A stretch of DNA of 64,000 nucleotides, taken from Pelomyxa schiedti (lineage: Eukaryota > Protista > Evosea). The notes beneath the pieces are model-generated. The model saw only the letters and a list, made by a program, of their open reading frames with translations. It was not told the origin of the DNA and searched no databases. This document shows positions 1,410 to 45,546 of this stretch, piece after piece; positions within the stretch are counted from its first letter, which is position 1, and every line of letters starts with the position of its first letter. The stretch lies in contig JAHLWZ010000815.1 in NCBI GenBank assembly GCA_020536535.1, positions 1 to 64,000 on the forward strand, in the 5' to 3' direction. Position numbers and translations under genes: made by a program.

Positions 1410-2527
1410 TGAGTAAATAATTCAATTTTCTGGTACAGATTTGACGGTTCCCCTTTAAAAAAAAATTCGAAAATAAATCAGTTTTATTTTTTTTCCTCTT
1501 CTTTTTGGACTTCGACCCACTTCCTAACTGGAGTCTCTGCCGTTGTTGTGTTTGGTGAGAATGTGCCAGCCTTGTGGGGTGCATGTGATTTATGAAGATG
1601 CCCAAACGATCTTCCTGAACTGTCGCGCCCCTCGTGAGAAAAGGGTCAAATGTCATTTTACTGTGAAACCATCAGTCCGGTTACAGATAGGGGAAAAAAA
1701 AACGCGTGTTCCCAGGTTTGATCCAACGGCCCAAGACAGAAAAAAGACTTGTTCCCCCACTACTCGCTCTTCTTTAAACCCGTCGCTCTTCTTTAAACCC
1801 GTCAGGGACAGTCGGCGAAATGAGTGCCGCCAGGTATTCATCGCCAATGTTCGTGAGCTGTAGTGAAAATCTTCGAGCTGAGGGAGGAGGCACCTGAGAC
1901 TGACGGAAACGATCTGTTAGGCGAAGAAGGGTTTTTTTTTCTTCTTCAACTGTCGCAAATCCGGCACCACCGGCTTTTGGCTCACACGACTGTACTCGTG
2001 CTTGTGGTCACAACGGGCCACGTCATGACCCACAGTTCGGCGGTCCTGGTGCACTCGATCCGATCTCGGGAAGGAGAAAAAAAAACCTTCGCCTAACAGA
2101 TCGTTTCCGTCACTCCTGCGGCTTAATTCCCAAACCAAGTGGTGCCATGCTGTCAGAACACTTCAGCATGTGGGAGTGAGTTGGAGTTTGGAAATGAAAA
2201 GCACGTTGAACAGGTCAATCCCGACAAAACGCGTTTTTTTTTTCTGATCTGATCCCCGACCGACAGTTTCACAGTAAAATTACATTTGACCCTTTTCTCA
2301 CGAGGGGCGCGACAGTTCAGGAAGATCGTTTGGGCATCTTCATAAATCACCTGCACCCCACAAGGTGGGCATATTCTCTACAAACACAGCAACGGCAGGG
2401 ACTCCCATCAGGAAGTCTGGGGAAATGAGGAAAAATAATTCGGCAAAAAGGAAAAAAAAAAGTGCACCAGATTGGTGAACTGTCAAATTTCCCCCCGATC
2501 GAACCAGAAAATTGAATTATTTACTCA
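1410..2527. repeat. About 1.1-kb imperfect foldback (long inverted repeat), probably a non-autonomous TIR element
   Basis: TGAGTAAATAATTCAATTTTCTGGT at 1410 pairs with its reverse complement ending at 2527. About 1520-1710 pairs with 2225-2415, and an inner stem at about 1900-1940 pairs with 2080-2112. Confidence 0.85.
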
Positions 2528-2611
2528 ATATAACCAGGAATTCAACATTCAACGAATAGTCAAAAAAAATTGAATTTAATGGACCAAACTCTGGCTAACC
2601 CCCTATTTATC

Positions 2612-2692
2612 AAAAATTTAATTTTATTGAATAAAATTAAAATAAATTTAATTTTATTGAATAAAATTAAAATAAATTTAATTTTATTGAAA
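2612..2692. repeat. AT-rich tandem repeat, 30-nt unit, about 2.6 copies
   Basis: AAATTTAATTTTATTGAATAAAATTAAAAT is repeated directly. Confidence 0.85.
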
Positions 2693-3292
2693 TCGGTCTT
2701 TATAAACACAGCAGAAACAAGCGGGAAAAAACCATAAATATATTTTTTTAACAAATCTCTGCCACAGGCACACAACAACAACAAAAAAAAAACCAGAAAC
2801 GCAATGTGGCTGGCAATTGTGGCTGGTTCTCATCACTTTGTGGCTGTCACTCACTCATCACCAAAATGTGGCTAATACTTGCCAGTGGAATCAAAAGTGT
2901 GGAATTATAAAAGGCCTTTCTTGTTAAGAGACCCTCCGTGTATGATACATTATGAGAGGTATCGCACTTTCTATTTCACAAAACAAACAATGAGCGCAGC
3001 ACTGAGAACAAACACCCAAACAAACAGAAAAATGGGAAAAAAAAAAAAAAAAAATCGCGCTCGGCACTTTGTTCTTGTCGTCGATGATTTCGTGTTAACA
3101 TCGAAGTGCGGGTTCGAGGAATCTGATGGTAATCGAGTGAGAAAAGAAAAAAAACCGTTGCGTAGATGAAGGTGCGGGTTAGCAAAAAAAGGGGTGAAGA
3201 GTGCGTGAATTGGGTCGTAACACATTTTGTGGGGTCTTAAGACTTGTGGATGGAAGACAAACACACGTGAACAAAATTGCCACAAATCCGAG

Positions 3293-5094
3293 ATGAACGA
3301 CATTGCCAATGTGCTTCCCCTAGCTTGTGGTGACACACTTCAGTATTCTTTCGATGAGAGGCAGTTGGCAATCTCCCAGGATTTGTCCCTCATGTATGGT
3401 ACCTCAGCTTTGTCAGATCAACATTGGACTGAGCCACCACTGCCTCAGCAGCGAGGATCAGCTCTGCTGGGGTCACAACAGGCACCACCACCACTGCAGC
3501 AGCAGTTGCAAGTGCTACAACAACAGCAGATCCCGGTCAGACCATTGGTGCAACAGCCTATAGTTCCACAGTCAGGAAGACGCAGGAATGTACAACAAAA
3601 CTCAACACCCACCCTCAGCACATCCACATCAACATCTGCAAGGCCAATTTCACAAGACAGAGCAAGAGTGGGGCCTGCAGATGCCAATCTCCCAGCAAAT
3701 GTGCAGGAGCTAATTACGAGGTAGTTCCATTTCCAATAGATTTGCTAGCTATTACTAAGATGTTCCTTCAGGCATCAACAGCAGGTGAATCGCATCTTGA
3801 GTGCTGCCCCACTTGCCCATACAACAGTTGTTGAGCCAGAAAAAGGACTATGGCCAACTTTTCGTGCTTCTCCTGCAGTTTCGTTTCCCTCTTTGCTTTC
3901 TTCCCGTTTTAATTAAAGCTGCAGGCCTTTTTCGCTATTGTACATTTTGATGTGTTTTGGTTCAACTCCTTCCTGAACGATGTTGTGCCCCGGATTGATT
4001 ATGGCCGCCGTGGTGCAAAGCCACAGATTTCAACAGCCGATGCTGTTTTGCTCTATTTTATGTGTCTATCAAATGGTTCCTCTGTGTACAAAACTGCAGC
4101 TCTCCAGCGGCTCTCTGGGAATCTTGCCCTGAAGGCAATTGAGCGGGTCAGAGAGGATGTAAGGTTGGTTCTGTGGCGGAGGTGGATTGAAAACCCTCCT
4201 ACACATCACCCTGACCCCACTGATCCAACATCCTACATAGCTGCTATTGGGGACCACACACCCATTATTGTGAACAAGCCCTCTGGTTCATGGGCCACAC
4301 AGGCTGAAATGTTTGATGCACATCACGGGTTCCATGCTGCTAAAAAGCATGTTGCTGTGCAGGCCACTCATCCTTACTATGCACGTGGCATTGGGAAGTG
4401 GTGCAAGGGGGCAAGGCATGACTATGCCGATCTTCAGACCTGTTGGGAGTTGTACAAGCCACTGCTGCGGAAAAGCCCTGAGGAACTACAGAGATATCCC
4501 CAGCGACCAACCTGGGCAGCTTTATTTGATTCTGGGTATATTGGCCCAGAACCCAGCGGGTATTTCTTTTCCCAAGTTTGTGTAAGTTAACTTTGACATA
4601 CAGGCTAAATAAAATTGCTATCCCACGAGAGAGTCATGCTGACCCTGATGTAGCTGCCTTGAAAAAGAAGCGGTACTTTTAAAACCAACCATCTCTCTGC
4701 AAACACTCAAACGAGCACAGTGTCGTTGTTGAACAGTTCTTTGGCCGGATGACAGTTTTATGGACCTCCTTGTTGATACCATACCGTTTTACTTTAGATA
4801 CACTGGACACAGATGTGGATGTGATGATACTTCTGACAAATGAGAATATCAAGTTTCCCTTTCTTCCCTTAATACAGTACACTTAATCTCCCAAGACTGG
4901 ACAACATGAATGCTGAAGACCTGAAGAATCACCAGAAGTATCTTGGCTTGTTGGCTGAGAATGCAGCCAAGGCCACAGCAAAAGCTGAGAAGAAGCGTGA
5001 GAAAGCTAAGGCAACCGCAGCAAAAAGGGCACGATTTTCAAAAAATGGTCCTGATGAGCCCACTGAGTCCCACTTCGCTACCTCCACCTCCTGA
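3293..5094 (+). mobile_element. PIF/Harbinger (IS5-like, DDE_Tnp_4-type) transposase gene with 5 introns, apparently intact
   Basis: Splicing introns 3721-3771, 3878-3918, 4560-4603, 4673-4720 and 4853-4895 gives one frame. It has an HTH-like region (DAVLLYFMCLSNGSS), IGDHT (D1), KGARHD, LFDSGYIG (D2), RVVVEQFFGRM (E) and LLTN. Confidence 0.85.
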
Positions 5095-5240
5095 TTCAAC
5101 CATCACCGGTGGCAGCACCCCGCGGGCCATGTTTCTGTTAATGCTGATCTGTTCGAATAGAACACCGTGTTAGAATAAAGAGGAACTTAGAAATTTTCTA
5201 GATCACGAAAGTTTCATCACCCTGTAAATCGGTTTTTGGG

Positions 5241-5326
5241 GAAATAACTCGAGTTATCAGGGGTAAACTCGATGTGGAAAACGAATTCATGCAGAAATAA
5301 CTCGAGTTATCTGGGGAAAACTCGAT
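5241..5326. repeat. Two direct repeats of about 33 nt with a palindromic core ATAACTCGAGTTAT, downstream of the transposase
   Basis: GAAATAACTCGAGTTATC(A/T)GGGG(T/A)AAACTCGAT at 5241 and 5294. Confidence 0.8.
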
Positions 5327-5393
5327 TTATTGGGTCTCCACCGAAGTCGTACCCCAAAAACTAGACTTTGTTCCAATAACAGGCTAACTTCAG

Positions 5394-5831
5394 TCAGTGC
5401 CAATCAGGGACTCGGTTTGGTGGACAGATATTGTAAGCAGATCGCCGAGGATCGAATTGCTGGGAATCGAAGGAAAAAAGATCAAAAAGATAAAGGGTAT
5501 CCAGGCAGGGATGAGTAAGTACCGGGTTATAACCATGCTCGTAAAGTGACGGAAAGCATGGCTCACCAAGCATCTCAACTACAATGGTCTCTATCATCTC
5601 GTCATTCCCCCCCGTGGCATCCCCGGTATCGGTTTCGTTTTCGTTTTCGTTTTCGTCCTCTTCCTCCTCGGCGTAGTCGTAGTCAGACTCGTCCTCTTCG
5701 AAGTTGAAACTGGGGGCGCCGACAACATTGCTTGTTGCATCAGTTGCGTGGGCGGATTCAGTTTGGTTGACTACGTCTCGCTCCGTCAACGAGGAAGCCG
5801 ACTCGGGTGTCGTACATGCACCGTATTCCAT
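5394..5831 (-). CDS. Hypothetical acidic protein (uncertain)
   Basis: 145-aa ORF with an E/D-rich tract and no recognisable domain. A plus-strand intron-like segment at about 5918-5950 makes the strand assignment ambiguous. Confidence 0.3.
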   Translation of the reverse strand: MEYGACTTPESASSLTERDVVNQTESAHATDATSNVVGAPSFNFEEDESDYDYAEEEEDENENENETDTGDATGGNDEMIETIVVEMLGEPCFPSLYEHGYNPVLTHPCLDTLYLFDLFSFDSQQFDPRRSAYNICPPNRVPDWH

Positions 5832-6299
5832 TCAACTGCTTGTTGGATTGGGTTTTGTTGCATTTTGTCTCGTGGTCATCGTCGCTCATATTAAGGTTTT
5901 TTGTGGCATGCTACACGGTAAGTTTTGTTTCTTTTTCTTTTTTGTTACAGGCAACAAATTGCGCCGAAACACAGAAGGCGAGGTGCATGAGATGGGGATC
6001 CTTCCAGCCCACAATGCTGTGTCTCCATTTATTGTAATGGATCAGGACGCGAATGCAACAGATACAAAGCTAGAACCACTCTTCTTGGTGGCAGGACTTT
6101 AGCCACAACCGCAGCCAGAACCCCAACCTGACCTGTGCAACAGTCAACAAGATGAAGGGCACCTCTAAAGCCCCACAGTCATTTCAGCTGCCATAGCCAT
6201 CTGCTTTCTCATATCTTTGATTTTTCTTCGAACCCAACAGAGTGGTTTGAGAAAAATTTTGGTACGTATCAAACAAGATCAACCAAACGACAAACGACC

Positions 6300-9200
6300 A
6301 TGTCCGTTTCTACCAAAGCCAAGTGCGCGTTGTGGGTGCTATCTCTCAAGTGCAAGCTGCCATCGTCCCATAATCTCGCGCAGGGCGCCCTCGCCGCCGG
6401 CTTGTGCACGCAGGCGGCGCTCTGCGCGTCGGCCGTCGTCTACGCCAGCGTCGTCACCAGGCACATCAGCGACGCGTGCGTGTGGTGGGGCGTCTCCGTG
6501 GGCGTAGCCGCCGGCCTTCTCGTGGCCGCCAACTTGGCGCTGAGCGGTGCTGTTTTTGGAGCCTGGAGGCTGGTGTCCAAGCACTCGGTGGCGCCAAAGT
6601 TCGTGCAATTCGGTGTGTGGGTGTTGCACCTCTTGTAATTGTGGGTTTTTTTTGTTGTTGTTGTTATTCCTTTTGACGAGGTTCGTAGAAGACAGGTTGT
6701 CCAGTTTGGAGGACAGAAGTTTGATTGACTCAAAATCAGTGAGTGGCCTTCCTACCTGTTGTTGAGGGGGACTAATCTGGTTCAGCCTTCAAATCTGAAG
6801 TACAAGATATTTATTGGTTGCGGCTCCGCTCTAGTCTTCATCGCATTTGTTATCTCTCTTTTTATCCTTATCGTTGTGGCCATTAATATTCCTGATGATG
6901 GGATCCCAGCACAAATCCCCGGTCTTTACGATGTAAGTTGCGTTCCCACGTATTTTGATTTACAATTGAATTATCAGGAAGTTGATATTACATACGATTC
7001 CAACGGGGTGCCACACATTTATGCCAGGAATTTGCATGATGGTGTCATGTCGATTGCCCTTGTCCATTCGCGAGATAGACTCTGGCAAATGGAGATGAGT
7101 AGGCGAATTGGATTAGGCACTATCAGCGAGATTCTCGGAAATGCGACCCTGGATGATGATATGTGCGTAAGCTCTTACATACTTTCTTTCCCCGTTGACA
7201 CTCAATCTCAGAGCCATGCGCACACTTGGAATTAATCGTGCAGTTAAGAGATCTGTTGCCACCCTGAGCAATGAATCCAGAGCGATATTGCAAGCTTATT
7301 GTGATGGGGTAAATGCGTTCCTGGATACTGACCCTCAGCTCCCTTTGGAATTCACTCTTCTTGGTGTAAAACCACGGCGATGGGAACTTGAAGACACAAT
7401 TTCCTGGCTCAAGGTTTAGTCGACGCCAACAGTAGCCCCAGTGTAACCACTCTCTTTGGGCCAGGTTATAGATCTATACATGGCTCATGATATCAGAAGG
7501 CAAGGAATATTCTGGAACTTTCTTACAAAACAGGGCCTATCATACAGCAGAATAATGGAGCTTTACCCAGCAATCAACAGGTACAATGAATGTTTTTCCT
7601 CCTCAAAACTAAGAAACATTTTTTCTCGCCTCTACAAGGACAGCAACAGCGACTACCCTCTCTCTTGAAGACATGGCCAATGGCCATGGCCCCACAGTTG
7701 GAGAAGTGTGCCCAGCCAGTGAAATTGATCCTCCTGAAATGATTGATTACATAAATAGCTTCATAAAGAAAATGCCCTCACCGTCATCCACTCCCACTGC
7801 AAGTCCAAGTCCCACCTTCCACAATACTTTTTCAGGAGGTGTCGAAGCATCCAACAACTGGGTGGTATGTGCTTGCATATGGCAATGAGCCTCTCAACAC
7901 TAATTAGGTCCATGGTAATATCACAGGGACTGGACCCATTCTGGCTAATGACCCTCATTTACAGTTCAGTTCTCCTGCAATATGGTACCAGGTGCACTTG
8001 GTTGTTGAAGGTCGAACTTGTGAACTCCTGAGAACAAGTTCAAGTAACATTGACTTTCCCTGCAGGACAGTATGATATATATGAGGCTACCTTCCCAGGA
8101 TTCCCACTTGGTCTCATTGGAAAAACTACACTTGGTTCATGGGGTGTTACAAACGGGGGTGTTGATGTGCAGGACTTGTAGGTAGCGCCAATGTGATGTT
8201 TGGCACAATTAATTAATCAAAGCTAACAATCAATTCTACAGGTATGTGATTGATACTGACCAGAACGACCCCAGTCGTTACATATATAATGGGTCAAGTC
8301 TCTCCTTCATTACAGAAACAGAAGAGATACTTGTCAAAGTAGTTGCAGACTTTCTTGTTTGTTACTGATAAAAATTATCAGGACTCCTCTCCGTACATTC
8401 TCAATGTGAGGCTCACTCAAGATGCAATGCCAATTCTCACGGATAACTATATGGACAGCAATGGTGATACGGTTCTTGCACTGAAGTGGGCTACAATAGA
8501 TCCCACCATCATTGACACCACAATGGATGCACTGTCTATGATCAATTTCAACCTGAGTGATTGGGAATCATTCACTGAAGCTGTAAGGTAACTTACCTTT
8601 TCCATCCTACTTTACAATGTTAAATAACCTTTAGCCTACTTATTGGACCGGTCTTGAACCTTGTATTTACGTCCAGTAATGGAGGTATTTATCACGATAT
8701 GCACTTACACTCCCTCACTGATAAATAGATATTGGGTACCGTTTGGGAGGTTTGGTTCCTCAAAGACGAAGTGGATATTCTGGAAAGTTTCCTGTTCCTG
8801 GGAATGGAAGGTGAGACCTCCCTTGTTTGCTTAGACACCAAAAAGAAGCCAGTTATGAGTGGACCGGTTATATACCTTTTGATGAGTTGCCATGGTCACG
8901 GAACCCTCCCAAGGGTTGGCTTGCAACGGCTAACAACATGATCACACCAGTTGGATATGAGAAACCAGGCTGTGTGAGTACATTCTTTGGTTTTCTGGTT
9001 TCCTGACCGCCAGCTTTAGATCCTTCCCGGGTGCTTTGATGTTCACTTCAGAGAACAGCGAATATCAGACTCACTTCGAGACCTTTCGTCGAGGAAGCTG
9101 CGCAACATCACTGCTTTTGATATGCAAAATCTTCAAATGGACTCGGTTTCGATGAGGTTCCAATCCCTCATCCCTGTGCTGCAGCAGCTGCAACTCCACC

Positions 9201-10015
9201 CAGAGTTGCTGTCAGCCGAGTCCCAGGACTGGGTTGACAACTTGCTATTGTGGGACGGCGTTTCCTCCATAGGATCGCACGAGGCGGCGGTGTTCAATTC
9301 CTGGGCCCAGGAACTCCTGCGGGTGGACAAAAACGAAACCGGGCAGGATCAGTGGGGCTCATATTTCAACGCGTGGATGCACATTGTCAGTACCTTCACA
9401 GGACAGGTTTATCTCCGGTCCCACAATGCATTCCCCCAATAAGACACAGGAAAACAATCCCGGCTGTGAGGGAGACTGCACCGCATTTGCAGCCAGAGCG
9501 TTCAACAATGCGTTCAAAAGAGTTGGGTCCTCTGATCAGTGGGGGTATGTGAATCCCATTTCCACTTTCGCGTTCACATTCACGTTCTTAACGTTCAATC
9601 AATCGCGCACTGCAAGCAATCCCATAATGACTACCAACCAAACAGAGTGACGGTACACCAAGCCGCGTTCAACCACCTCGTGATGAACTCGGCGCCGTCG
9701 CCGATACGCTGTGTGTTCAACCGGCACGTGGCCGACGGCGGCGACTGCGACACCGTGCAGTCCGCGTGCCCCGCGGACTCGGACGACATGCAGTGCACGG
9801 CGGGGCCGGGGTTCCGCGCAGTGTTCTCATACGAGGACGACGCGGGAGAGGGCATTATGGGAGCGGCGGCGACGGAGTGGATGTTGTCTCTGGGGCAGAG
9901 TGGGAACCCACTGTCGTCACACTATGACGACATGATGAAGGTGTGGTCACAAGGCCAGCTGTTTGAGGCCACCTCCTACACTGTTGAATCCACATACCAC
10001 ATTTCACCCAGGTGA
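6300..10015 (+). CDS. Penicillin acylase family Ntn-hydrolase (peptidase S45) with N-terminal transmembrane segments, multi-exon
   Basis: Motifs GVPHIYA, RDRLWQMEMSRR, LQAYCDGVNAFL, the catalytic SNNWV (Ser at 7850), PILANDPHL, WGVTN, ATANN and GQSGNPLSSHYDD. Confidence 0.93.
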
Positions 10016-10144
10016 CGGAAGAAGTCAATGAAAGTCACTCATCTATCCCTACAACTATCAACCAAACAACCTCCACTATGTTTTTTAAAGGAACTACAAT
10101 CTACACCACAAAGAGTCACTCCAAAAAAAGTTCGCGTTTGGGTG

Positions 10145-11803
10145 ATGAGTTTCCTCTTCAAGAAGAAGCCGGAGGCACCAAAGCCCGTCGGCGTGCTCAC
10201 GATCCTTGTCATCGAGGTGTGCACGTGTTATGAATTATGGGTCTTGTTTGTAGTATCAAATTCACGTATAACGCATGGTTTTGTACCACAGGGCAGAGAC
10301 ATAAAACCAAATACAATAGGTTTTCTTTATGTTTTTTTTAATTAATTTTCAATCATTAAACATCAAGCACACTAGGAGGAAGGGATCCTTATTGTGAAGT
10401 CAGACTGAGGACAAGTGGGCAATTTGCCCCTGTTTTTCTTACTACTGTATGCGCTAAAACTCTTACTCCAAAGTGGAACCAAGAAGTTATTTAGTACGCC
10501 GTTTTATTGCTTCTGTTATTACTTGCCGGTTTCTACCACTACTAACCACGATACAGTCAAATAATGAATCCTAAAACCGACTGTGCTGAGATACGCCTTT
10601 ACGACAAGAACAAATTTCAGGCCAGTGAATTACTTGGGGTCATTGATTTGCCTGTTACGCAGCAGGTAACTTGACACTTTCTGTTGTACATTACATGGTC
10701 TTATTCCACAAAAAAAAACAAAGCTAGGAAAACCTCATCAGGATGGATGGTACATACCAATCTGCTCCCATTGTTTGATGCATAAAACAAAAATAGGTGG
10801 GATTTAATGGACCCAGTCAGAAGGACTCAACCTGCCAAAGGGGCAATCCACCTTGTAGTTATGTACAGTGGAGACCAACAAATTGAGCCACGTAATGATT
10901 TTTTGCCTCTTTCCCGCCTCTCATTCCATTTAAGCATTACCACCTGGTTGGATAACTAAAACTGATCAACACAAACGTGTCTTCTATGTAAACACTCAAA
11001 CAAATGCTACAACTTGGATTCCTCCTGCTGCAGGTGACTCTTCTTAGCGATGTTCTTGATTTATGTCTTTTTAATACCCGTTTAGAACCCCTTGCTACCC
11101 CGTTAGCACAGTCAACAATGCGCCAGTCGGGGCCAGTTCAATCAGGTCCTGCTACGACCAGCCTAGCCACATCAACTACTGTTGTGACAACAACAACAAC
11201 GACACCAACAGCAACGCCTATGATGCCTGAATATCAGTACTCTGTTGTGCCAGCTAGTGCTCCACCAATGGAATATGATCAACCAAATCCACCTCCTCCT
11301 GAAAATCAGATGCAACCTGGATTGTATCCCCAATTTGCGGAAGGTAAGCCCATTGCTTCACCTCGTAATCCTTTTAATCTCTGAACCAGGATACCCACCA
11401 GGCTATCCTCCCGGCTTTCTTCCTCCCGGTTATCCTCCACAAATGATACCGCAGCCACAACAAACAACCAGGCCTACTGCAGCTCCCCCACCCCAAATGG
11501 TACAAGTTCCAATGGGTTCCCAAATGCCGCCACAGCCACAGCAGCAACCACAACCGATTGGTACGTATGACATGAGAGGATTCCTTGAGAGTAATGGATT
11601 ATCTCACTTAGTTGTATGTATCTCTCACTTTTGGAAGAATTCTCATCTTCCAATAGGCACTGTTCGAGAAAGAACGAATTGACATGGAAGTTCTTGTTGC
11701 AATGAGCGCGGATGAACTCAGGCAACTGGGAGTGGAATCATTTGGGGACAGGAAAAAAATCGAGCTTGCTCTCTCCCGCCTGAAGTCTTCGTCTTCATTC
11801 TGA
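10145..11803 (+). CDS. C2 + WW + Pro-rich + SAM domain protein
   Basis: C2: VLTILVIE...DPYCEV...PKWNQ...YDKNKFQASELLG. WW: LPPGWITKTDQHKRVFYVNTQTNATTWIPP. SAM: FLESNGLSHL...FEKERID...LRQLGVESFGDRKKI. Confidence 0.85.
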
Positions 11804-12029
11804 TGAGAACCCTTGTGTTGAGGCTTTCTTTGTATTTGTGGGGAAAAAAAAAAAACAAAAATTACACAAAGACCTAAACACACTTAACACCGCCGATCCT
11901 GGCTTTGTACACAGACTTGTATCAATTATAAAAATGTGGCGCAACCTCACCACATAGTGTGTACTGTGGAACGAAGAGGGAAAAACAAGAGTAAGAAAGA
12001 ACAAACACCTTTCTTGTTCATTCTCTTTC

Positions 12030-12711
12030 TTACAGCTTGATTGCGAACTTGCGTGTGGGGTAGGCGGAGAGCTTCTTCTTCTCCTTGAGTGTCTTTTTGG
12101 CAAGTTGCTTTGGTGTGAGCTCGCGGCGCTTGGCTCGGGTCAATTTGGGCCTAAGGTCCAGAGGCTTGTACTTGTGTGTGCTGTAGTACTTCCTCAAGTG
12201 TGCCTTTTGTGTTTGGTTGATGACTGTCAGAACACGGGCAATAGACTTGCGGACAGTCTTTCTGTAAAAGGTTATGTGAGAATGTTGCTCGGTAGTAAAA
12301 AGGATGTATTTGGCGGGTGTTAGAGGCTGCAACAGTTACAGCGGTTTTTTGTGGTTAGTGTGAAGTGTGCGTTTTCTACACACATTTTAGCGAGCTTTGA
12401 GGGAGCACCACCAGTAACTTGGGCTACCCTGAGTTGACCCAACTCTGTCTTAAGCTCTTCAAGCTGCTTAAGCAAGTCGGTCTTCGACTTTTTTCTCAGT
12501 TCGTATGCCTTGACCTTGACTGCAGTAGGAGGCGAATTAATAAAGACAACAAAAAAGCGACACGAAACAAAAAAAAAAAACAACGCAAAGAACGCGAAAC
12601 GTTGTGTAACAACACCTCGCACATAACACCCACCAAGCCAACAAAAAAAACAAGAACAACGACAACAAAAAAATCGTGAGAATGGAGTGGCATGGTGGAT
12701 GCCGTACCCAT
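12030..12711 (-). CDS. RPL35: 60S ribosomal protein L35 (uL29)
   Basis: Spliced product [28 protein letters not shown]...[16 protein letters not shown]...[16 protein letters not shown]; two introns. Confidence 0.97.
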
Positions 12712-12960
12712 TTCGAACTGTGCGAGACTACACAAAGGGACTTGGTTGACCCTGGGGCTGCTGTAGGGGAAAACAAAAAAAAATCTTTTTGATCTCGGCG
12801 TCCCAAAGACGAAAATTAATTGCTTCTCATACCAATTGCACATGACAGTTACGTCAGTGCTATCGTTCTATTCTATCGTTAGAACCCGGTGATTTAGCAT
12901 AAAACAACTTCAAGGTTTGTGGTAAAGGGGAAAAAAAGTGGAGCTAGTTGAGACAGAATT

Positions 12961-15900
12961 CTATTTACACAGGAAGTTTAACCCACAGGAGGTCCACAGG
13001 TCACGTACCTCTGCCGTGTTGTCTCCCTCGCTTACAAGGAAGTTTGACATGCTCAAGTGTGCCTCATTCCACATTTCCACAAGAACATCTTGGCCCTGTG
13101 ATTAAGTGAGTTATTGAGATAGACTGCGCGGTAACTGACCTTCTCCCTGAGAATAGCACACAGTGCTACAGAGGCAATAAAGCCTGGATGAAGCGATTTT
13201 GTTGGTGTTGAGAGCAACTGTGAACACTGAAGGGAGACTTCCACAATGAAGAGAAAAGGGATGCATTGCTGCGAAGCAAGCCAGCCAACAATACTTAGCA
13301 CTTTGCGCCATGCATTTGGGTTGTCTAGTTCCAAATCCGGAAGATTTTTTACGGTTTCCTGTAGCCTGTTTGGAGTTGTGAACATTTTTTTCCCCCTGGT
13401 CTTGGTGTTGTTTACGCTGTGTTAAAGTGCTCAGTACAAAGAATATTAGCTCTATAAAGGGAATCTAACAGCCGGCATATTGTGGCTTGGTCCTTTTCCT
13501 TTCTCTGCAATATAAATACAACACTTTGAGAGATAATCTTTTACAAGACAAAATTGTTAACTCCATCAATTTGGGAAACAAAAAGATAAAATTACCTGTG
13601 ATTGGGATTCCGTGCCTAATTCTTTTACACACTCTATGGCATTGTCCAGATCCAAGGAAACGAGATATTCTTGGAGGAGCATGTCAATGCGGTCTAAGAT
13701 ATCTACTGATTGTTTTTCTGTGGAATTCGTAGCATTTGGAACACTGCTAGAACTTGCAGTGAGAGCCAATACAGAGGGCGGGTGCTGCTCTTGATGCTCT
13801 TGAACTTGTTGTACAACTGGTGAATCGAGGGCGACGTCTGAGTCACCGTGGTATTCCTCTATATGCAATAGTTGGTAATGGGATCATAACCCCAATGGGA
13901 ATACCATCGCCGTCCAGTTCAAGAAGTGAAGGCATGGCTGACTCGGGTACAGTACCCACTGAAAGAGGGGAGATTGTGGGAAATGGTGCATGCACAAAAT
14001 CTGGGTTTCCAGGTGGAGACACTGATGTTGGAGCCCAATCACCACACGAAGATACCCGCCGATGTGAGCGAACGTAGGGTGCAGAGTTGGTAGAAGCCCA
14101 GCCTGATTTCAGGTTTTAGGTAAGAACAAAGACGTTGAGGAACAAACTTGGAACAGGTGGTGCGGTTGGAGCTGTCGTAGTAACAATAGAGCGTCTTTCT
14201 ACATATAGATAAGGAAGGGGAAAAAAGGAGTATTGAACAACTGTTTGGTGAAGGAGAAGCCCGTGAAGGGAAACGGTTTCTCAGTTGAGTTAGTTTTTCC
14301 TCATCTTCAGCCTTCAGAGATGCGATTATTCAACTAGAGTTTTCCACAAGATATTACACACAGATTTATTCCGAACTCCAGGTTTTAAACTTTCTATTGA
14401 TCTGGGTTTCCATGAATTGGCTCGTAGATCAGATAGATCCTAGAAAAAGGTAAACACAAAACCCAACAACTCGAAAGAAGGCACAAGCATCATGAACTTT
14501 ATTCGAGGAGTTAAGGATTCATCAGTCTGAAGTCTTTTTATTTGACTGAAGATATCCTGAATCATCTTTAGGAACTACAAAAAAGCTAGAGTTTTTTGAT
14601 ACATCCAGTAAAGGGTGTCCGTCAGGTGACTCTAGTTGACCACTAGCAGTAACAATGAGTTTGTGAAGTAGTTCAAGTTCAAACTAGAAAATTAAGTTAT
14701 TTCAAGATGTGAAACTTCGTGCATACTTCGGGATTTTCAGATTTGGGAAAGAAATCCAGGAATTTCTTAGCACAACCAAGAACGATAAACTTGGGTAAAA
14801 GGTCAACTTTGAAAAGCTCTCCAATAAAAAGAGCAGCTGTGCAGAAGATGAGATTTGCAGTTCCGAACCACTGAACATACTTCCAAGTACTCGTTTCTTC
14901 TTCCTATCGGCATATTCTTCATCATCTCTTGAATCAGGGCGAACAAAAATCTCCGTGTTGCATCGATTTAACAGTAATCTTCTAAAAGTCTTTGTAATTC
15001 CCAAGGTTAGGCGGAAATTCTATCAAATAAATCAACCTGTCTGGTTCCATTCTCGATGAAGGAGGGGTATATAAGGGCCAACTCGCGAGCCAATATGGCG
15101 TACATTGGTGTGAATTTCACTTCATTGACAGCTTTATTGAAAATCATTAAAACTGCACCATCAAGGATCTGATGTAATAGGGTTAATCAGCTTCCATACA
15201 AAGTTACATGGAAAAACAACCTCATAGGAAGGGACATTAATTGCCATGATTTCCACTAGAAGAATGTCGAAATTCTCCAGAGTGAGCTTATTTAAAATTC
15301 TACCAACATCAGTTGAAAATGGATGAAGTCATCTCCATACCCAGTAATCTTGTTTAAAGTTGTACGATTTGCTTGTGTGGAATTAGTAGGCTCAGTAGGA
15401 CGGGTCCAAATGTCCTGACGTGTCTGCAAGACCCATTTTAAATACAATAGACCGAAGAAAATGGAAAAGACCTGATCATTATGCCGGTTCCTTGCCCCAT
15501 CCCAACTTGAATGTTTCCAATCCCTTGAACGTTCATTTTCACGCTACTTGGTTCAGTTTACTTTAAGGGAAAGCTTTTTACCTGTTCGTAGATGCCCTGA
15601 TGATCACCAGAAAAAAAAAGTTTCTCGATTGTTACAGTCAGGCCTGCAGGTTTATTGGTGTAAGTCTGAAAAGGTGTTAGTTATCATCATAAGTAAGAAA
15701 GGAAATGACCCACAGGTTTGAAGGACATCAGAAAGTCTAAAGAGTAACTTCGTTTGTTTGAATCTTGACTCTCATCCACACCCTAGAATGGTGAGAACAA
15801 CTTACACTGCATAAATAATCTAACTACATGCTCTTCCAGTGGGGCAGTCTGTGGTTGTGAGTAAGAGTAAGGAATAAGACTTCCATTCAACTTGAACACA

Positions 15901-18725
15901 GTGTGAGTAGAGGTTGTCAAGTGTGCAACCATGGTGTGGTTTTCTGTTAAAATTGGAGAATCCTTGAGATTGTCACCATCGGCAGACAGTACTGGGGTAA
16001 AACTGGTGCCCTGTTTGGCAGAATCTAACAATTTCATCATAGTGCTATACTGGCCTAAAAGTGTCCCTTCCTGAAATAAGTGTTTGAAAGATTAACAGAA
16101 GTCGTTAGGTAATACCAGGCAAGCAATTTGTACAGTAGAGGAATAAGTGTAAGGGCCACCAACCCCACTTGCCTTAACACTCACTCGTAATTCTGAGGGA
16201 ATTGGGTGCTTAAATTCTGTGAAGAGGTTTATTTGTTCTCCATCATATATGGGTTTATTGTATGGCCCTGTTGAAACAAAGTGGGTAAGAGGTGGGAAGG
16301 GTACAAAGGCCAAATACCTGACATGGGGGACAAATCAACAGTGGGGTCGTTGCATTCCCAACTCAATGTAACGTCAGACAAAACTACATGTGCTAGGCGT
16401 GAGAATTGTCTGCTCACACAGCCCTCGAGTTCAGTTCCAGAAATAACGTGCTCGAGGGCCCCACTCCCACAAGATGCAAGTTCAGAATACTGAGTTGTGT
16501 CAAAGGGGAAAATAAGAAAAAATAGCAAAGCAGTTTTACCGTTGGAAAATCACAGTCGTCACCAATAAAAAGAATAAGAAGTCTTGTGTGACTTCGTGAG
16601 GTTTGACGTAAGTTGCTAAAAGTCTGTGAAAGATCGGCGGTTCGCTTCCCGCCAGTGATGTAAACAATTTGCCTTATTCATCATTAAAATGACCTCAATT
16701 GATGAAGGGACGTTACCTCAAACCACGTCTCAGTTCTGGAAGAAGGTGAACGGACAGGGACTCTGAGGCTTGGGTAGGTGAAGAATGTAAGTACTGCAGG
16801 AACTGTGCAGCAATTTTGAGGGCATCTTCAGAAGATTGGGTCGGGCAATTAAAGCAGCTCACAATTGGGTGGTCTGGGGTACTACCTAATGAATACCTCT
16901 ATTTAAAATTCGACTATTACAGTCTTTGGATATATGAAGGCCATACAGAAAATATTGAATGGAGTTGAAGTAGAAATCATTCTCATAAGAGACAGAAATA
17001 AAAGGAGAGAGGACTGTGCAAGTGATAGAACTTCTTCAGTTTGGCCACAGTCAACTATAAAAAGAACTTCACCTTAATGAAATGTGAATTTCTATCAGGA
17101 GCCAAGTAAGAAGTGAATACCTTCAGGAATTTTCTGTCTGCAATTAAAGATTGGATGCAATTTAATTAGAACTGGCGCAACAGTTGACGTGGGTGAAGCA
17201 GTGAGTTTTGGAACTGGCATTGGTTGATAAAGTAGTCTTGTAGAAAGTGGCATGGCTGAATATACAAGAACAACCAAGTCAGTTGGACTTTCTTTGTAAC
17301 TTCATGTGTTTAAGTATACAGTGTAGAAAATGTGCTGTGCGAAGTGCTTGTTGTAGAAGAATGTTAAACTGTACCCTTCCTTTAGATCAAATGCTGCGCG
17401 GGTGAGCATTGGAGTTTCGTAAGTGACTGAAGTGATGTGATGGGTTGGCGATGTGACTTGAAGTATTTCTGATGACATGCCAATCAAGTACGACAAACTT
17501 GAGGACTGGAAAACATGTCTTATTGTTTTTTAGGATTGCTATAACAAAAGAAGAAACCTTGGCGGCAGTAAGTAATTTGGTAAGACCAAACGTGCAGCAT
17601 TTCCTTGAAGTGGTATGTCATGCAAAAACTCCAATTTGATAGAGATTCGCTTCCATTTGGATGTAACCTACAAGAAGAGATATATGCAAATCCTGAAAGT
17701 GAAGAAAGTGAAGATAATGCTACCTCCAAGTCAAATGCATAACAACCCTGGGGATAATCTTTCCTTATGGTTGGGCATGCCATTTCACTACTTGATGAAG
17801 TTGTATCACAAGGTTTTGGGACTGGTATAACTTTGGCAAAAATCTCAGCATGGTCATCCACAACGGCGCTGCCAGCCGTCACCCTTCCCATAATTCCGCG
17901 AGGAAACCTCGCTCTCACCTTTGTGAGTCTGTTTCTGTCCGTTCTTTTCCTCTTTTTCCTTGCCACACTTGACAGTCCGTGTGTAGGTGACCTTCGGAGC
18001 TTAGCTGCGCCAGAACCCCCAGGACAGTCTCCTCCACTCTCATTATCTGCATTCCCATCATTTTCGTCATCTCCATCATACTGATGGTCAGAAGATTCTC
18101 CCCCTTCCTCTGGTAGCTGCTGTGGTTGCTGCTGCTGCATTGGCTGTTCCAGGTTTTGCTTCTGCGCATGCAACTGCGCTATTTGCTGCAACTGCTGCTG
18201 CAGCTGCTGCAACTTGTCCCGCTCCTTCTCCTGCTGGTCCAGCGGCGTCGCCGCGGCCTCCCCGCCGCCGCTCGCCACCGCCTCGGGGATGCCGCCGCAC
18301 AGCCGGTGCGTCGGCGGCGGCGACGGCAGGCGGCGCCTGCGGCTGCCGCCCCCGCTTGCCCCCGCGCCCGCGCCCGCGCCCGGGCTCGAGCTCGAGCCGC
18401 CGCTCATCTGCAGCACCCTGTTGTTTGTCGCCTGCTGCTGCCCGGCGTTGACAAAGTGCCACCACACCGTCGTCTTGGCCGCGCACTGCTCCACGACGCC
18501 GTCGACCACGACGCGGTCCAGGCGCGCGCGGCCGCCCGTGCACGCGCCGCACCGGCTCGACCGCGTGCGCGACCGCGACCTCGCGTCCGCCGCCGTCGCG
18601 GGCGCCTGCTGCTGCCCCACCACGTCGTCCCCGCACTCGTCGCTGTTGCTCTCGTTGTCGTTGTTGCTGCTCCCGCCGCTCGTGTCCTCCTCATCAAACA
18701 CCCACATCTTGGCGGTCTCCTCCAC
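12961..18725 (-). CDS. VIT-vWA(degenerate)-eIF4G-like fusion protein (eIF4E-binding motif, MIF4G, MA3)
   Basis: VIT-like: LDRVVVDGVVEQCAAKTTVWWHFVN. vWA: GEVLFIVDCGQT...LLLFLSLM...PFNIF. 4E motif: KRSYSLDFLMSF at about 15720-15755. MIF4G: ILNKLTLENFD...IFNKAVNEVKFTPMYAILAREL...FRRLLLNRC...FIGELFK...PRIKFMMLDL. MA3: MLLQEYLVSLDLDNAIECVKELG. Stop TAG at 12961. Confidence 0.8.
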
Positions 18726-18981
18726 CCTTCCTTCTTTCGTGTTTTGTTTCGTTATCCAAGGGTTAAAAGAAACAACACCGAAGATCGACGCCTACGAAAA
18801 GGAGGAAAACACGAAAATAAAAAAAAAAAACAAAGTTTAAAAACATTGTTGATTTGTGTGAAGGCACACAGCAGCGTGTATGTGTTGTGGTGAGGTGAGG
18901 TGGGGGCGAATTTGTGTGGCTGTTTGAGTGTTGGTGGTGGATTTTAACTTATTACGAGGAGAGTGCGGCTGGGGGTGGGAT

Positions 18982-20608
18982 TTAGGTTCCTTTGCGTGAG
19001 CGCTTCGATGTTGTGGGTGCTGGCTCTTCATCGCTGCTACTACTGCTGCTGCTGCTGCTGCTTCCGGAGCTGCTCTCACTCTTTCCGCGCCTACGGGTTT
19101 TGCTGGATGTGCTCTTTGTCGTGGTTGTGCTGGACTTTGGCTTGGATGAGCTACCAGATTTGGGCTTGGTCTTGCTCTTGCTCTTGGTCTTGGTTTCTTC
19201 TTCACTGGAGTCGGAGTCACTTTTCTTGGCAGATTTTCCTTTAGGGGCTGGTTCTTCAGGCTTTGTGGTCTTGTCTGGCTTTGCTGTTTCAGGCTTCTCT
19301 GGCTTGGATTTCCCTGGCTTTTCAGGTTTTTCTGGCTCAGCCGGCTTGCCGGACTTGGCAGGTTTGGGTGCCTCAGGAGGCCCCTCGGGTTCCTCTGCCG
19401 GTACAGTTGATGATTTACTGGGGGACCCGGGTTCCGCTTCAGAAGGTTTATCGGCTGCTTCTTCGTTTTCGGGTTTGGTGCCCTCTTCCTCACTTCCGGA
19501 TTCGGGCTTCTTTGCCTTGGCCTTGGTTTTCCTCTTTGTACCCGGGGAAGTTTTTCTCCTCTTTCTTTTTGTCCTTTCTGACGCCAGACCATCAGTTTCG
19601 CCATTCAGGAACCCAATGATGCGTTGTATTACAACTTTCTTCACACCAATTTGCTTGAGTTTATGTTCCTTGCACCACTTGACCAGGTCCTCTGTGGAAT
19701 GCATAAGATAAAAACATAAAAATTACAACAGTACCGATGTTGTAATACTGATGAAGGTCGGCAGCTGAGACACCCTTTTCAATATCGGGTTTGTGCTTGC
19801 TTACCTTGGGAACCTTGGATACCTTCTTAGCGACTTTGGAAATCTAATACCATTTAGACCAAAATCTTGAGCAATCAATGGGAATACATGGCCAGTAGTG
19901 ATTGCTTCCAGAAGTTGTTGCTTGTGGTGTGCCTTGGAAACGGTGTGACCCAAAGCCTTTGCCACGTCATAAAGAAGAACTGGATCCAACTTGTAGTTCC
20001 GTAAGTCTCACGTTACATGGTCAGAAATAACATACCCAATGGAAGAAGTTTTCAATTCCAGTTTCCACGATTTTATCCATGATTGCTGAACGAAGCTCAT
20101 CCTCATCCCTTCATTGTAGTTTGGCAAATAGCTACCCATTGCAGAGTACAAACTTTTCATCACTTAGTTCAGGAGCAATCGTTTCCAGAGTGGCTTTTCC
20201 ACAAGTTTGAAGGAATTTCTTTTGAAGATAAATAAACGAGCGAATAGGACGGAAAAGAAACCTCGAGACCGTCGCGTTCTACAAGACCTTGCACGGTTTT
20301 AACATAGGCAGCTTTAGACGTGTATTTGGGTTCATCAGCAGAGAGAATAGTTTTCAACTCGCTTTTATGAAGTGATTCAAAAAACCGAGACACTCCGGTG
20401 TGTATCATGTGTGCTTCCTGGGAGGGCATTAAAATAGGGGGGGGGGGGGGGGGGGGGGGGGGGGAAAGAGATCTACGAGTGCTTCATTTTGAGCAGCCCT
20501 CCTCACTTCTTTCCTATCACTCCTTACGTATTCAATGTTGTGTGCGCTCAACAGGCGATCTTTGATACTGCCGGAAAGTTTGGTCTTCAACTCCTCGAGT
20601 TTCTGCAT
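18982..20608 (-). CDS. Probable chromatin/nuclear protein with a SAP-like helix-extension-helix and a Lys/Ser/Glu/Pro-rich tail
   Basis: Spliced exons from MQKLEELKTK. TEDLVKWCKEHKLKQIGVKKVVIQRIIGFL is SAP-like. There is a basic NLS-like RTKRKRRK. Confidence 0.65.
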
Positions 20609-30327: not shown

Positions 30328-33300
30328 CTACACACTGTTGCCCAGAACACTAGTCAAAGAAGCACGAGCCCACACAGCGCTCCCATTGTGCTGAATAAAC
30401 ACAGTCTTTGTCTCCGCATCATACCAGCCATGAGCCGAACTGCCATTCGGCCTCTCCATGCCCTCCACCGAGACCCAGATTTTGGTCCCGGTGTTATACA
30501 CCTGCCAGGCGTCGTCCTTCGACGTGAACAGCAGGAAGCTGCTGTTTCCCAGAGGCACCACGAAGGCCTCGTGGTTGGACGTGAGGTCGTAGGCCCTGGG
30601 CCGCCTCGAGTGCTCCGTCTTCACGGGAACCACGTCGGTCAGCGGCAAGTCGCTGGACAGAAGAGTGCCGTACTCTATAAGTGCCCACAGAACATGCGGA
30701 GTCCGGCTATCCACAAGCAGCCTCACCTTCTCCCCAAAGGCCAGTGGTGTCTTTGTCCACAGGTTGGCCTGCAGGCAAGTTAGTTAATGCGTGGCTAGAA
30801 TTGTAGTTTGTTGCATTTTTCAATACGTTGGTGAGTGAGATTTTTTCTGGGGTCTGGGTATTGAGTGTTATGGAGGCATACAGACCTGAGGGGAGTATCT
30901 CCACACAGTGTGGCCTGTTTCTCCAATGGCAAATACAAAGCCGGCAGTGAACACTGGGCTGCAGTACTCGGCGAACTTCTCGCAGTGCAGAGTGGAAAGC
31001 TCAGTGAACACCAAGGTCTCCACATGGATGTACCCGAACCTGTTCCTCACGCCCGACTCGCTCTCAAAGACATACAGCCGGCAGTCACCGTCGAACACAG
31101 GGTAGGCTCCGTGAGTGCTGAACGGTATTTTGTTGGGATGCTTCACAGCGGCGCCGCTTCCGTTTCTGTCCACCTTGGTCACGTGCAGGTCGCGCCCGTC
31201 GTTGTCATTTCCATACAGGGCGAACAGAATTCTGCGGTTCGGATCCCAGGCCGCGCCGCCGTCGTGAGGGTCAGTGAAGGCAACAGTGATTCCGCTCTGG
31301 CTGGTGGCGAGTTTGTGAATATTGGCTGTGATGCCCTTGACCTCTTCGTCGCGGCGCCGGCGGTCTTCTTCATTTCGCTTCTTCCTGTCTTCCTCTTCTC
31401 GCTTTATGCGCTCCTCGTCTTCTTTTCGCCGGCGCTCCTCTTCCTCTTTGTTCCTCCTTTGCTCTTCTTCTCTTCTCTTGCGTTCTTCGGCTTCTCGTTG
31501 CCTTCTCTCTTCTGCTTCTTTCCTCCTAGTTTCCTCTCGTTTTTTCTGAAGTGCGAGGGATGTCTCAACGGAGCACAACGAGGCCAGCTGGTTGGCAACT
31601 GTTTCAGTTGAGGGCATGCTTATTACTGTTTCCTCGATATATGGCTCAGTGGCACAAAGTAGGGGCTCCAGGGATTTTGACAAATGTTCTAGGTATCCCC
31701 AGAGTGAGAGGCACATAGAATCCGAGTGAGTGCTTAATAATGCGGAAAATGTGTCTGTCACTCGGTCTAATTCTCTCTTCAAAGTGTCGCAGCTTTCAAT
31801 TTGCTTGGATAGCTTTTGTTCTATACGAAGGTTAATCGGACTCTAAACGACTTCAAAGAACTTTACCACGTGGCTTGATGGCATTGTTGATAGTTGAAAC
31901 TCGGTCGTTTTCCACAGCATCAACAATGTGATGTACTTGGCTGAAGAAATATTTTACTTGTGCTACCAAGTTTTCCCTCTCCTTTTTAAGGATTATTTGT
32001 AACTATTGTTTGTGAGGGAAAAAAGGAGCAACTGTACTTGCTTTGTTTCAGCAAGAGTCTTATTGAGGGAGGCTGACATTTGGCCAATATTTCCCGATTT
32101 GTTTACAATTGCTGTACAGTGTGATGAAAGTACTTGTTTTGCAGAATCAGCCGCTGGGTGTATTGCACGGCAGTCATGGCCCTTATGTGACCCTATGAGG
32201 CAGTGTGCACACACTAAAACTTTATCTGTGGTGCAAAACAGGTCCGTTTCCTTGTTGTGCTCTGTACATTTCGGTCTGTAAGTACATCCCTGAGGAATAC
32301 TAGCAGAACCGGGAGGAGGGTAAAGTGTGAGAGATGGAGGTGCTGAACGAGCCAAATCCTGAGAAGAATGACTGGCGTGGAGCTCGTTACCACTGCAACT
32401 GACCGGAGCTGTCCTCTCTGGAGAACAGCTTCCGCTATCGCCGTCATTTCTTCCACTCCTACTATCTGCACTGGAACCACCGGAAACAACCGAAAGCCTC
32501 CTGCGCGTGTGTGCCCTGAATGGACCAGCACCGTGCACAAACCCGTCGTGCTCGGCGCACAAGGTGCTGCAGGAATCACACATGACACTAGCCTCCTTAG
32601 GGCAGAATATGCACACCTTGGGAGTATTCGCCAGCCTCTGAAGCTCCTCGATCCGCGCCCTGGCCTCTTCGGCCGCCCTGAACGGCGGCACCGTCGTTCT
32701 CCTGCAAATCGGGCACACCATGGGCGGCCCGTCATTGTTCACGCCAATGACGGCCTGGATGCTGCTGCCGTCGCTGCGAGCCCCGCTGCCCCTGGCGGGG
32801 TCATCCTCCGGCGTGCAGTATACATTCAGCAGCGAAGCGAGGGTGGTAGGGACGCAGTCGAAGGGGGCAGTCCCCGCCCTAGGGGTGTAGGGCAGAGGAG
32901 GCAGCGGCGCCGGCATCGGCGGCACGTCCTCCACCTCTTCGCGCCCCGTAACGCTCTCACTCGCACTCGCGGACCCAGTCCCGCTCCCGCTCGCGGCCCC
33001 GCCGTCGCTCGACGAGGCGGCGCTGGTGATGGGCCCGGCGGAGGCGGCGGAGGAGGAGCAGGGGGGCATGGGGATGGGGACGTACTGGTTCATGAGGAGG
33101 AAGTGCAGGGAGGAGGCGACGCGGTGGGACGACTGGGCGCAACGCAGGCAGCACAGGTGCCCGCAGGCCAGCGAGACCGCCTCGCGGGCCGGGGAGCTCA
33201 GGCACACGCAGCAGCGGTACTCGTCCTCCTCCTCCCCGTGCTCCCCCTCCTGTTGCCCCTGTCCCCGCACCCCTTCCTTGCCCCCTGGCCCCTTGGTGTT

Positions 33301-33411
33301 GGCGTTGCTTATGATGGCGGTGTTGGCGTGGCTTGTCTCGGTTATGGGTGTGGCTGAGGGAGTTGTTGACGTGGAAATCAGCGAGGGGGCGACGACGGGA
33401 GGCGTCGACAT
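30328..33411 (-). CDS. TRIM/RBCC-like protein: RING, B-box1, B-box2, coiled coil and probable beta-propeller C-terminus
   Basis: RING: CCVC...CGHLCCLRC...CPIC. B-box1: CIFC...CDSC..LCAEHD..VH. B-box2: CTEH...FCTTD..LVCAHC...HKGH. Then an E/R/K-rich coil and a beta-rich tail (HDGGAAWDP...YPVFDG). Confidence 0.88.
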
Positions 33412-44993: not shown

Positions 44994-45546
44994 CGTTGAG
45001 CCAGCAAGGCCTCCTAGGCTTTTGGTTTTAGCGTTTCTCCTAGTATTGTAGATACTACTAGTTGTGAATACTGTTCTCTATCACCCAAAGATTTGCTTTT
45101 TTCTTTTTCTTTTTTCTCCCAACAAACCCACTGGCATTCGGCCTATTCGGGAACTCCCGGAGAACCCGTCCAAGGCCAAAGGGACGGGGAAGAACAGCCA
45201 GTGCCCGATTCGAGGGGCGCCGAAAGCGAAGCGCGACGGGTGGAGAAGAGGCAGGCTCGCCAATGAGGAGGAAAAAAGGGAGATCTGCGAGGATTTTCTC
45301 CGTGGGTGTTCTCGCCTTCCAACCCGAATAAGGGAATAGTGGCCGTGGAATCCGGTTCCATTTAGTGCACCCCGAAAAGACGGAGAGAAAAGCTCCACCA
45401 CCGACGGGCGACGACACCGCATTGCGAAACACGGCCTAAACCAAACACGGGCAGCAACAGCAACGACCAAGCCCAACCAATTCCGCCACGCCAGTCACGC
45501 ATCACCTATAACCAGCCACACCCACCACACAACACAGTAAGTAATA

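Follow-up and report, generated by a model that had tools for sequence, protein, structure and literature searches.

A VIT-vWA-type module joined in frame to an eIF4G core in the pelobiontid amoeba Pelomyxa schiedti

The window analysed here, a stretch of 64,000 nt of contig JAHLWZ010000815.1 from the Pelomyxa schiedti assembly GCA_020536535.1, carries on its minus strand a gene in which a VIT-vWA-type N-terminal half is continued in frame by the core of the translation initiation factor eIF4G. With exon 10 (15828-16070, minus strand) as query, a search covering 1.8 billion representative proteins returned the P. schiedti protein KAH3756790.1 (1481 aa) with 100% identity at residues 724-804. 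This public entry, labelled "eIF-4G" without mention of the N-terminal module, was used for the whole-protein searches. It maps exactly on the window with 28 exons and a coding sequence at 18707..12961 (minus strand), and all 27 introns are of the GT-AG type and 38-75 nt long. Two 45-nt phase-0 introns that an earlier note on this DNA had placed at the junction (16115-16071 and 15827-15783) are introns 9 and 10 of the mapped protein. Of the gene extent claimed there the lower bound (12961) coincides with the end of the coding sequence, and the upper bound (18725) falls on a GTG, with the annotated ATG following 18 nt further downstream. The published assembly comprises 52.4 Mb in 5337 scaffolds, for which gene models from Augustus were refined by PASA and EVM using transcript data (PMC8887013); our own-genome searches covered 52,367,397 bases in 5337 contigs. 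The gene and its parts, from the N- to the C-terminus and with reference to the ortholog from Mastigella eilhardi described below, are the following.

12961..18707, minus strand: whole coding sequence, 28 exons, 1481 aa, exact protein mapping; stop codon TAG at 12963-12961.
18432..18542, minus strand: first two strands of the VIT-like sandwich (aa 56-92), aligning with the Mastigella N-terminus; GC-rich, GC content at third codon positions (GC3) 0.95.
17943..18431, minus strand: low-complexity insert of 163 aa (aa 93-255) inside the VIT-like domain, without Mastigella counterpart and matching no Pfam family.
17560..17942, minus strand: rest of the VIT-like domain (aa 256-364), split by intron 1 (17723-17668); scores 0.92 to ESM-Atlas VIT clusters.
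17122..17559, minus strand: post-VIT region (aa 365-472) with an SPTH-type motif, probably Hyb-1a-like; conserved with Mastigella.
16454..17070, minus strand: vWA domain (aa 474-627), exons 5-8; Pfam VWA_3, 25.5 bits.
17038..17052, minus strand: DCGQT (aa 480-484), degenerate motif of the metal ion-dependent adhesion site (MIDAS), aligned to DCSSS of PARP4; DCCSY in Mastigella.
16648..16656, minus strand: TGG (aa 577-579), aligned to the metal-binding SDG of PARP4 and TDG of ITIH1; invariant TGG in Mastigella.
16116..16453, minus strand: post-vWA beta region (aa 628-723), Hyb-1b-like according to the extension of the ITIH1 alignment; ASG-GGPYTY is invariant with Mastigella.
16071..16115, minus strand: intron 9, 45 nt, phase 0; its retention would end the frame at TAA 16094-16092.
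15828..16070, minus strand: exon 10 (aa 724-804), predicted to form the tail of the VIT-vWA module with helices and strands; holds Met 16040.
15783..15827, minus strand: intron 10, 45 nt, phase 0, at the boundary between the VIT-vWA and eIF4G parts; if retained, the frame stops at TAG 15785-15783.
15597..15782, minus strand: putative eIF4E-binding region (aa 805-850) with YSLDFLM at 15746-15726 (aa 817-823), then NKPAGL.
14416..15354, minus strand: MIF4G / HEAT-1 (aa 903-1109), exons 14-21; Pfam, 119.9 bits.
13257..13691, minus strand: MA3 / HEAT-2 (aa 1290-1398); Pfam, 62.5 bits.
12964..13256, minus strand: C-terminal tail (aa 1399-1481), in which no W2 was detected.

A search with the eIF4G half retrieved Trinity-assembled proteins of Mastigella eilhardi (EukProt EP01105; 1290, 1144 and 1107 aa), in which VWA_3, MIF4G and MA3 occur together in one open reading frame and VWA_3 scores 29.3-29.5 bits, above the cut-off of 27. 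The architecture of the window gene is thus present in transcripts of another amoebozoan. BLASTP of the Pelomyxa against the Mastigella protein gave one unbroken alignment, with 40% identity over 721 residues (E 6e-152). It starts just ahead of the vWA domain, covers the post-vWA region, exon 10 and the 4E motif, and reaches into MIF4G. E724-G725 and G805-V806, the first residues after introns 9 and 10, are invariant between the two proteins. As each of the junction introns brings in an in-frame stop when retained, the conserved continuation is present only in the spliced form. The single in-frame gene joining a VIT-vWA half to eIF4G, as proposed in the earlier note, is therefore supported by Mastigella cDNAs whose alignment continues uninterrupted over both exon junctions. 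Within Pelobiontida, Mastigella and Pelomyxa are separate genera. Because the Mastigella transcripts encode an ortholog that aligns unbroken through the junction, the fusion is expressed as a single mRNA, at least in Mastigella, and is older than the split of the two genera.

It is very improbable that the join is an annotation artefact in which a VIT-vWA gene ending at TAA 16094-16092 was wrongly connected to an eIF4G gene starting at Met 16040. Such a two-gene model can draw on the in-frame stop of a retained intron 9 and on the ATG 52 nt downstream of this stop. We rejected it because the joined protein is encoded by cDNAs of Mastigella, where residues at both junctions are conserved, because the spacer would measure 52 nt as against the ~270-340 nt that separate the gene from its neighbours, and because exon 10 is predicted to encode a tail needed by the VIT-vWA fold. 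The public model was, moreover, built with Augustus, PASA and EVM on transcript data. Exon 10 probably opens with the helical stretch that comes after the vWA in the VIT-vWA family, which is at odds with the separate eIF4G start at Met 16040 considered earlier. In a low-confidence model, the Mastigella stretch orthologous to exon 10 forms two helices, then strands, before the 4E motif, a layout that fits the arrangement of three helices and VITpt2 described for the family (PMC10539598).

Two of the three Mastigella Trinity isoforms (P0004 and P0008, not P0009) begin at an internal Met after the VIT-like region and are either VIT-less isoforms or incomplete assemblies. Retention of intron 10 in Pelomyxa would yield a complete stand-alone VIT-vWA protein of ~818 aa, and regulated retention of intron 9 or 10 could uncouple the two halves.

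In the whole public protein, Pfam detected MIF4G (PF02854) at aa 903-1109 with 119.9 bits, covering profile positions 2-202 of 203, and MA3 (PF02847) at aa 1290-1398 with 62.5 bits. VWA_3 was found at aa 474-627 with nearly the full profile covered and a score just below the cut-off of 27 (25.5 bits, E 1.5e-5). Neither VIT nor VIT_2 matched the Pelomyxa protein or its Mastigella ortholog. Of the four domains expected in the spliced product, MIF4G and MA3 were thus recovered, VWA_3 narrowly missed the threshold and VIT was not detected. Pfam searches with single exons gave faint MIF4G and MA3 matches only, with no VIT and no vWA, and scans of the own genome for the VIT and VWA_3 families did not pick up the window contig. 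The whole public protein was therefore essential for domain detection.

The eIF4G part carries the motif KRSYSLDFLMSF, then NKPAGL, in Pelomyxa, and its Mastigella counterpart is KKLYTRDFLASF, then NKPEGL. YTRDFLA of Mastigella aligns with YSLDFLM, and Y817, D820, F821, L822 and N831-K832-P833 are invariant between the two. At the level of sequence, this agrees with the previous reading of YSLDFLM as an eIF4E-binding motif of the YxxxxL-phi type, present upstream of MIF4G and conserved in Mastigella. The order of 4E motif (aa 817-823), MIF4G (119.9 bits) and MA3 (62.5 bits) was also described correctly. The scaffold had been called complete, a term that we narrow to the core, as neither W2 nor a PAM2-bearing, PABP-binding head was found. 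MA3 is present in most eIF4Gs outside yeast, while W2 is of animal type and not universal.

Beyond the Mastigella ortholog, a search with the MIF4G region returned proteins with eIF4G domain sets (eIF_4G1, MA3 or W2). The named relatives were all fungal, one of them being 'initiation factor 4F subunit p150'. To judge the state of the core we used the 45 MIF4G columns in which 13 reference eIF4Gs show at least 85% identity. Of these, the Pelomyxa fusion keeps 37, the Mastigella fusion 34, and each of two ordinary P. schiedti paralogs (see below) 33. By this measure the MIF4G core is not degenerate and is conserved as well as in the ordinary paralogs.

A profile built from the two orthologs had only two significant matches in the PDB, PARP4 (its vWA, E 1.3e-6) and ITIH1 (E 1.5e-6). 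The ITIH1 match comprises the end of the vWA domain and the strands that follow it, reaching chain residue 530 and thus extending beyond the vWA. Applied to the own genome, the same profile detected, besides itself, the vWA domains on contigs C238, C841 and C824, each of which also has a Pfam VIT match. This fits published work in which the vWA domains associated with VIT group in one clade (PMC10539598). By these profile comparisons the vWA domain is of the PARP4/ITIH1 type and belongs to the VIT-associated subset. On contig C841 (G000:C841:28882-32193, minus strand), an intron-free frame of ~1100-1300 aa has VWA_3 N-terminal of VIT, in reversed order relative to the usual one or as part of a tandem.

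An intact MIDAS (DxSxS ... T ... D) is typical of the VIT-vWA family without defining it. The Pelomyxa vWA domain reads IVDCGQT at this place (D480-T484, window 17052-17038), and three MIDAS positions are lost in both Pelomyxa and Mastigella. The degenerate MIDAS reported earlier from IVDCGQT was confirmed by DCGQT together with TGG, and extends to Mastigella with DCCSY and TGG. Judged from these alignments, the metal site is dead or degenerate in both species.

Of the claimed combination of VIT and vWA of the VWA5A/PARP4/ITIH type, the vWA part thus stands through its profile matches to PARP4 and ITIH1, and the VIT part was detected neither by Pfam nor by profile-profile comparison. Support for a VIT domain comes from an ESM-Atlas feature search, in which the N-terminal parts of both orthologs score 0.92 to VIT clusters with 176-186 of 256 features in common, and from the context. 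In an AlphaFold model from the two-sequence alignment, with a mean predicted local distance difference test score (pLDDT) of 40, residues 1-205 are all-beta; Foldseek with this model gave ITIH1 as top match (E 1.5e-13), which at a pLDDT of 40 weakly supports the assignment. The PARP4 VIT alignment from the two-ortholog profile was below threshold. A local hidden Markov model of the N-terminal part gave no significant match to paralogous VIT loci; its weak matches to five of them fall at the same spot, in the post-VIT region. VIA-align returned generic beta-sandwiches at Z 10-11 (Ost1 and the N-domain of M1 aminopeptidase), ITIH1 not being among the 50 matches listed. A word-based search for homologues of aa 300-810 returned nothing but the query, and a metagenome scan found no relative. 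Taken together, the language-model result and the domain context make a VIT domain probable, not proven. The own genome holds at least 78 VIT candidates.

The first VIT-like strands are coding in the frame used here according to codon-position GC of 18432..18542, and GC3 is 0.95 over the first 92 codons of the gene. In Pelomyxa only, as compared with Mastigella, the VIT-like domain is interrupted after its second strand by the 163-aa insert. This insert contains Gly/Ala/Ser runs, a Gln-rich helical stretch, an acidic run and a KKRKR basic patch. At the other end of the module, the exon 10 peptide matches bacterial surface proteins built of ~70-residue repeats (best E 1e-10 over 7 stretches), which probably represents summed weak repeat matches, not homology.

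The genome contains two ordinary eIF4G-type genes, G000:C559 (~9300-13980, minus strand) and G000:C72 (~1700-6700, minus strand), whose MIF4G exons match fungal eIF4Gs with E values of about 1e-15 to 1e-19. Upstream of MIF4G they carry near-identical eIF4E-binding motifs, VYTKEFLMSF and VYTKEFLTSF, and the 4E motif of the fusion resembles their YTKEFLM and YTKEFLT. MA3-like sequence lies downstream in C559 (weak exon-level Pfam match, E 0.011), and in C72 it was judged by eye in a local model. The head of C559 is long and Pro/Thr-rich, with a PAM2-like motif. Other MIF4G loci that were tested (C351 and C421) had no match to eIF4G queries. Because two ordinary eIF4G genes exist, the fusion is, by sequence comparison, an extra, third eIF4G paralog, and it is not the only eIF4G of the cell, a possibility that a count of paralogs had to address.

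In a MIF4G tree the fusion orthologs form one clade (support 100/99), apart from C559 and C72 (support 97/97). The joined models of these two paralogs, which were used in the local tree and in the column comparison, are approximate, and the tree has Pelomyxa and Mastigella as its only Amoebozoa. The genome further has about eight eIF4E loci, every one split by introns, and six eIF-5a-domain loci, so that translation-factor families look expanded; in a quick check none of the eIF-5a loci adjoined a VIT match.

Cap-dependent initiation has eIF4G as its hub, and regulation and mRNA circularisation enter through the N-terminal head of this factor. We propose, with a probability of about 0.5, that the gene encodes a lineage-specific third eIF4G paralog of pelobiontid amoebae, which would serve as an alternative eIF4F scaffold with a VIT-vWA docking head. 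In this paralog the usual disordered PABP-binding N-terminal head would have been exchanged for a cytosolic VIT-vWA module of the VWA5A/PARP4/ITIH kind. The exchange point would be today's phase-0 intron, with the eIF4G core directly after it; the acquired module would run through the helical tail and lack the VWA5A C-terminal domain. The core, consisting of the 4E motif with the NKP-GL stretch, MIF4G/HEAT-1 and MA3/HEAT-2, is predicted to bind one of the ~eight eIF4E paralogs and eIF4A and to assemble an eIF4F-like complex. The head, acting independently of metal, may dock this complex to a protein partner or dimerise it, and in this way could influence translation, possibly as a specialised form of control. 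In Dictyostelium, a cytosolic VIT-vWA protein acts via protein partners, namely an F-box/RING protein, and autoinhibition has been proposed for it (PMC10539598); it is the only studied cytosolic amoebozoan relative.

Several observations weigh against this proposal. Pfam found no W2 / HEAT-3 in the whole protein or in aa 1395-1481. The PABP-binding head is missing, and a simple regular expression detected no PAM2-like motif in either ortholog. With two ordinary eIF4Gs in the genome, general translation does not need the fusion protein. The stem of the fusion clade is very long, at 1.73 changes per site, and leads away from the ordinary paralogs; it could mean a changed function. Transcript-level support comes from Mastigella, while the join in Pelomyxa is read from the genome and the public gene model. 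Moreover, the missing Pfam VIT match concerns both orthologs, and hhalign against genomic VIT domains gave a probability of 1%, though the strands were in register.

The main rival reading, possible if unlikely, regards the protein as a bait: a faithful eIF4G copy on a VIT-vWA scaffold would be attacked by viral proteases or bacterial effectors, and its cleavage or modification would free the autoinhibited VIT-vWA module to signal. The two ordinary eIF4G genes, which leave the fusion copy spare, the lack of W2 and of a PABP head, the at least 78 VIT candidates in the genome and the autoinhibition proposed for the cytosolic Dictyostelium protein are all compatible with such a role. However, the eIF4G core is not worn down and keeps at least as many conserved MIF4G columns as the ordinary paralogs, and the eIF4G part is C-terminal, in place of the VWA5A tail, and not in a loop. 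Both the intact core and this position argue somewhat against a mere decoy, and an effector or signalling output for a bait is not known. A tripwire could also be built from an authentic eIF4G on an autoinhibited VIT-vWA module, in which cleavage or modification of the linker would trigger signalling, for example via an F-box/RING ligase; we consider this version rather unlikely.

Equally doubtful in our view is a non-initiating adaptor, whose 4E motif and HEAT domains would keep eIF4E or eIF4A from the ordinary eIF4Gs, making it a repressor, or which would alternatively recruit a ubiquitin ligase or another machine, held by its VIT-vWA part, to capped messenger ribonucleoproteins. Here again the absence of a PABP-binding head and of W2 can be counted in favour, together with the long stem in the MIF4G tree, which suggests a shift in function, and the partnership of the Dictyostelium VIT-vWA protein with an SCF-type F-box/RING protein in a non-substrate way. 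Yet constraint has preserved the MIF4G and MA3 cores in two genera, which a mere eIF4E sponge would not need; nor has a ligase partner been identified in Pelomyxa.

Compared with eIF4Gs of the eIF4G1/eIFiso4G type, the fusion protein shares the YxxxxL-phi motif before MIF4G/HEAT-1, followed by MA3/HEAT-2, and its nearest relatives are eIF4Gs. It differs in having a folded VIT-vWA-type module of ~800 aa in place of the disordered PABP-binding head, in lacking W2 and a PAM2-like motif, and in its long branch apart from the ordinary eIF4Gs of the same genome. With VWA5A/BCSC-1 and Dictyostelium Vwa1 it has in common an N-terminus that by eye is not signal peptide-like, a predicted beta-rich head, a VIT-associated vWA, and probably a post-vWA beta region and a helical tail. 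In contrast to these proteins, its putative VIT is too divergent for Pfam, its MIDAS is degenerate, the C-terminal domain of the family is swapped for an eIF4G core, and a 163-aa insert interrupts the VIT-like domain in Pelomyxa only. PARP4 provides the best vWA match in the PDB (E 1.3e-6) and is likewise a cytosolic protein in which VIT-vWA is joined to an unrelated module. The module added in PARP4 (BRCT and PARP catalytic domains) lies N-terminal of VIT-vWA, whereas that of the fusion is C-terminal and a translation scaffold, and PARP4 keeps DCSSS. Plant NLR integrated decoys are comparable in the way they would work, with a copy of a host target on a scaffold and ordinary copies elsewhere in the genome; the fusion differs from them in that it has neither an NLR nor a known signalling domain, lacks a link to pathogens, and carries an eIF4G copy that is fully conserved and not reduced.

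Among the papers searched, none connects eIF4G to VIT or to von Willebrand domains in such a manner, and none mentions eIF4G in Archamoebae. Within that literature a conserved eIF4G variant with a VIT-vWA-type head is an undescribed design, the protein being public and named plainly "eIF-4G". The fusion may link cap-dependent translation to a partner of the VIT-vWA head. It also offers a handle on what cytosolic VIT-vWA proteins such as VWA5A and the PARP4 module bind, and on how protists with many eIF4E and eIF4G paralogs share out translational work. If the bait reading were true, it would point to an amoebal innate immunity that guards the translation apparatus.

The fusion gene is flanked on the same strand by a ribosomal protein uL29/RPL35 gene at 12320-12622 (minus strand; Ribosomal_L29, E 7e-10), separated by about 340 nt, and by a gene at 18982-19704 (minus strand) for a SAP-domain protein with a long Lys/Glu/Ser-rich tail, separated by about 270 nt. 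The window contains ~10 GC-rich islands (at least 62% GC, against a window mean of 46%). One of them, at 18101-18750, lies over the 5' end of the fusion gene, and others are found at 6301-6600, 9601-9950, 32501-33400, 45501-46100, 54551-55050, 60101-60450 and 61351-61750. The GC-rich 5' end of the fusion gene suggests that GC3 declines steeply from 5' to 3' in genes of Pelomyxa.

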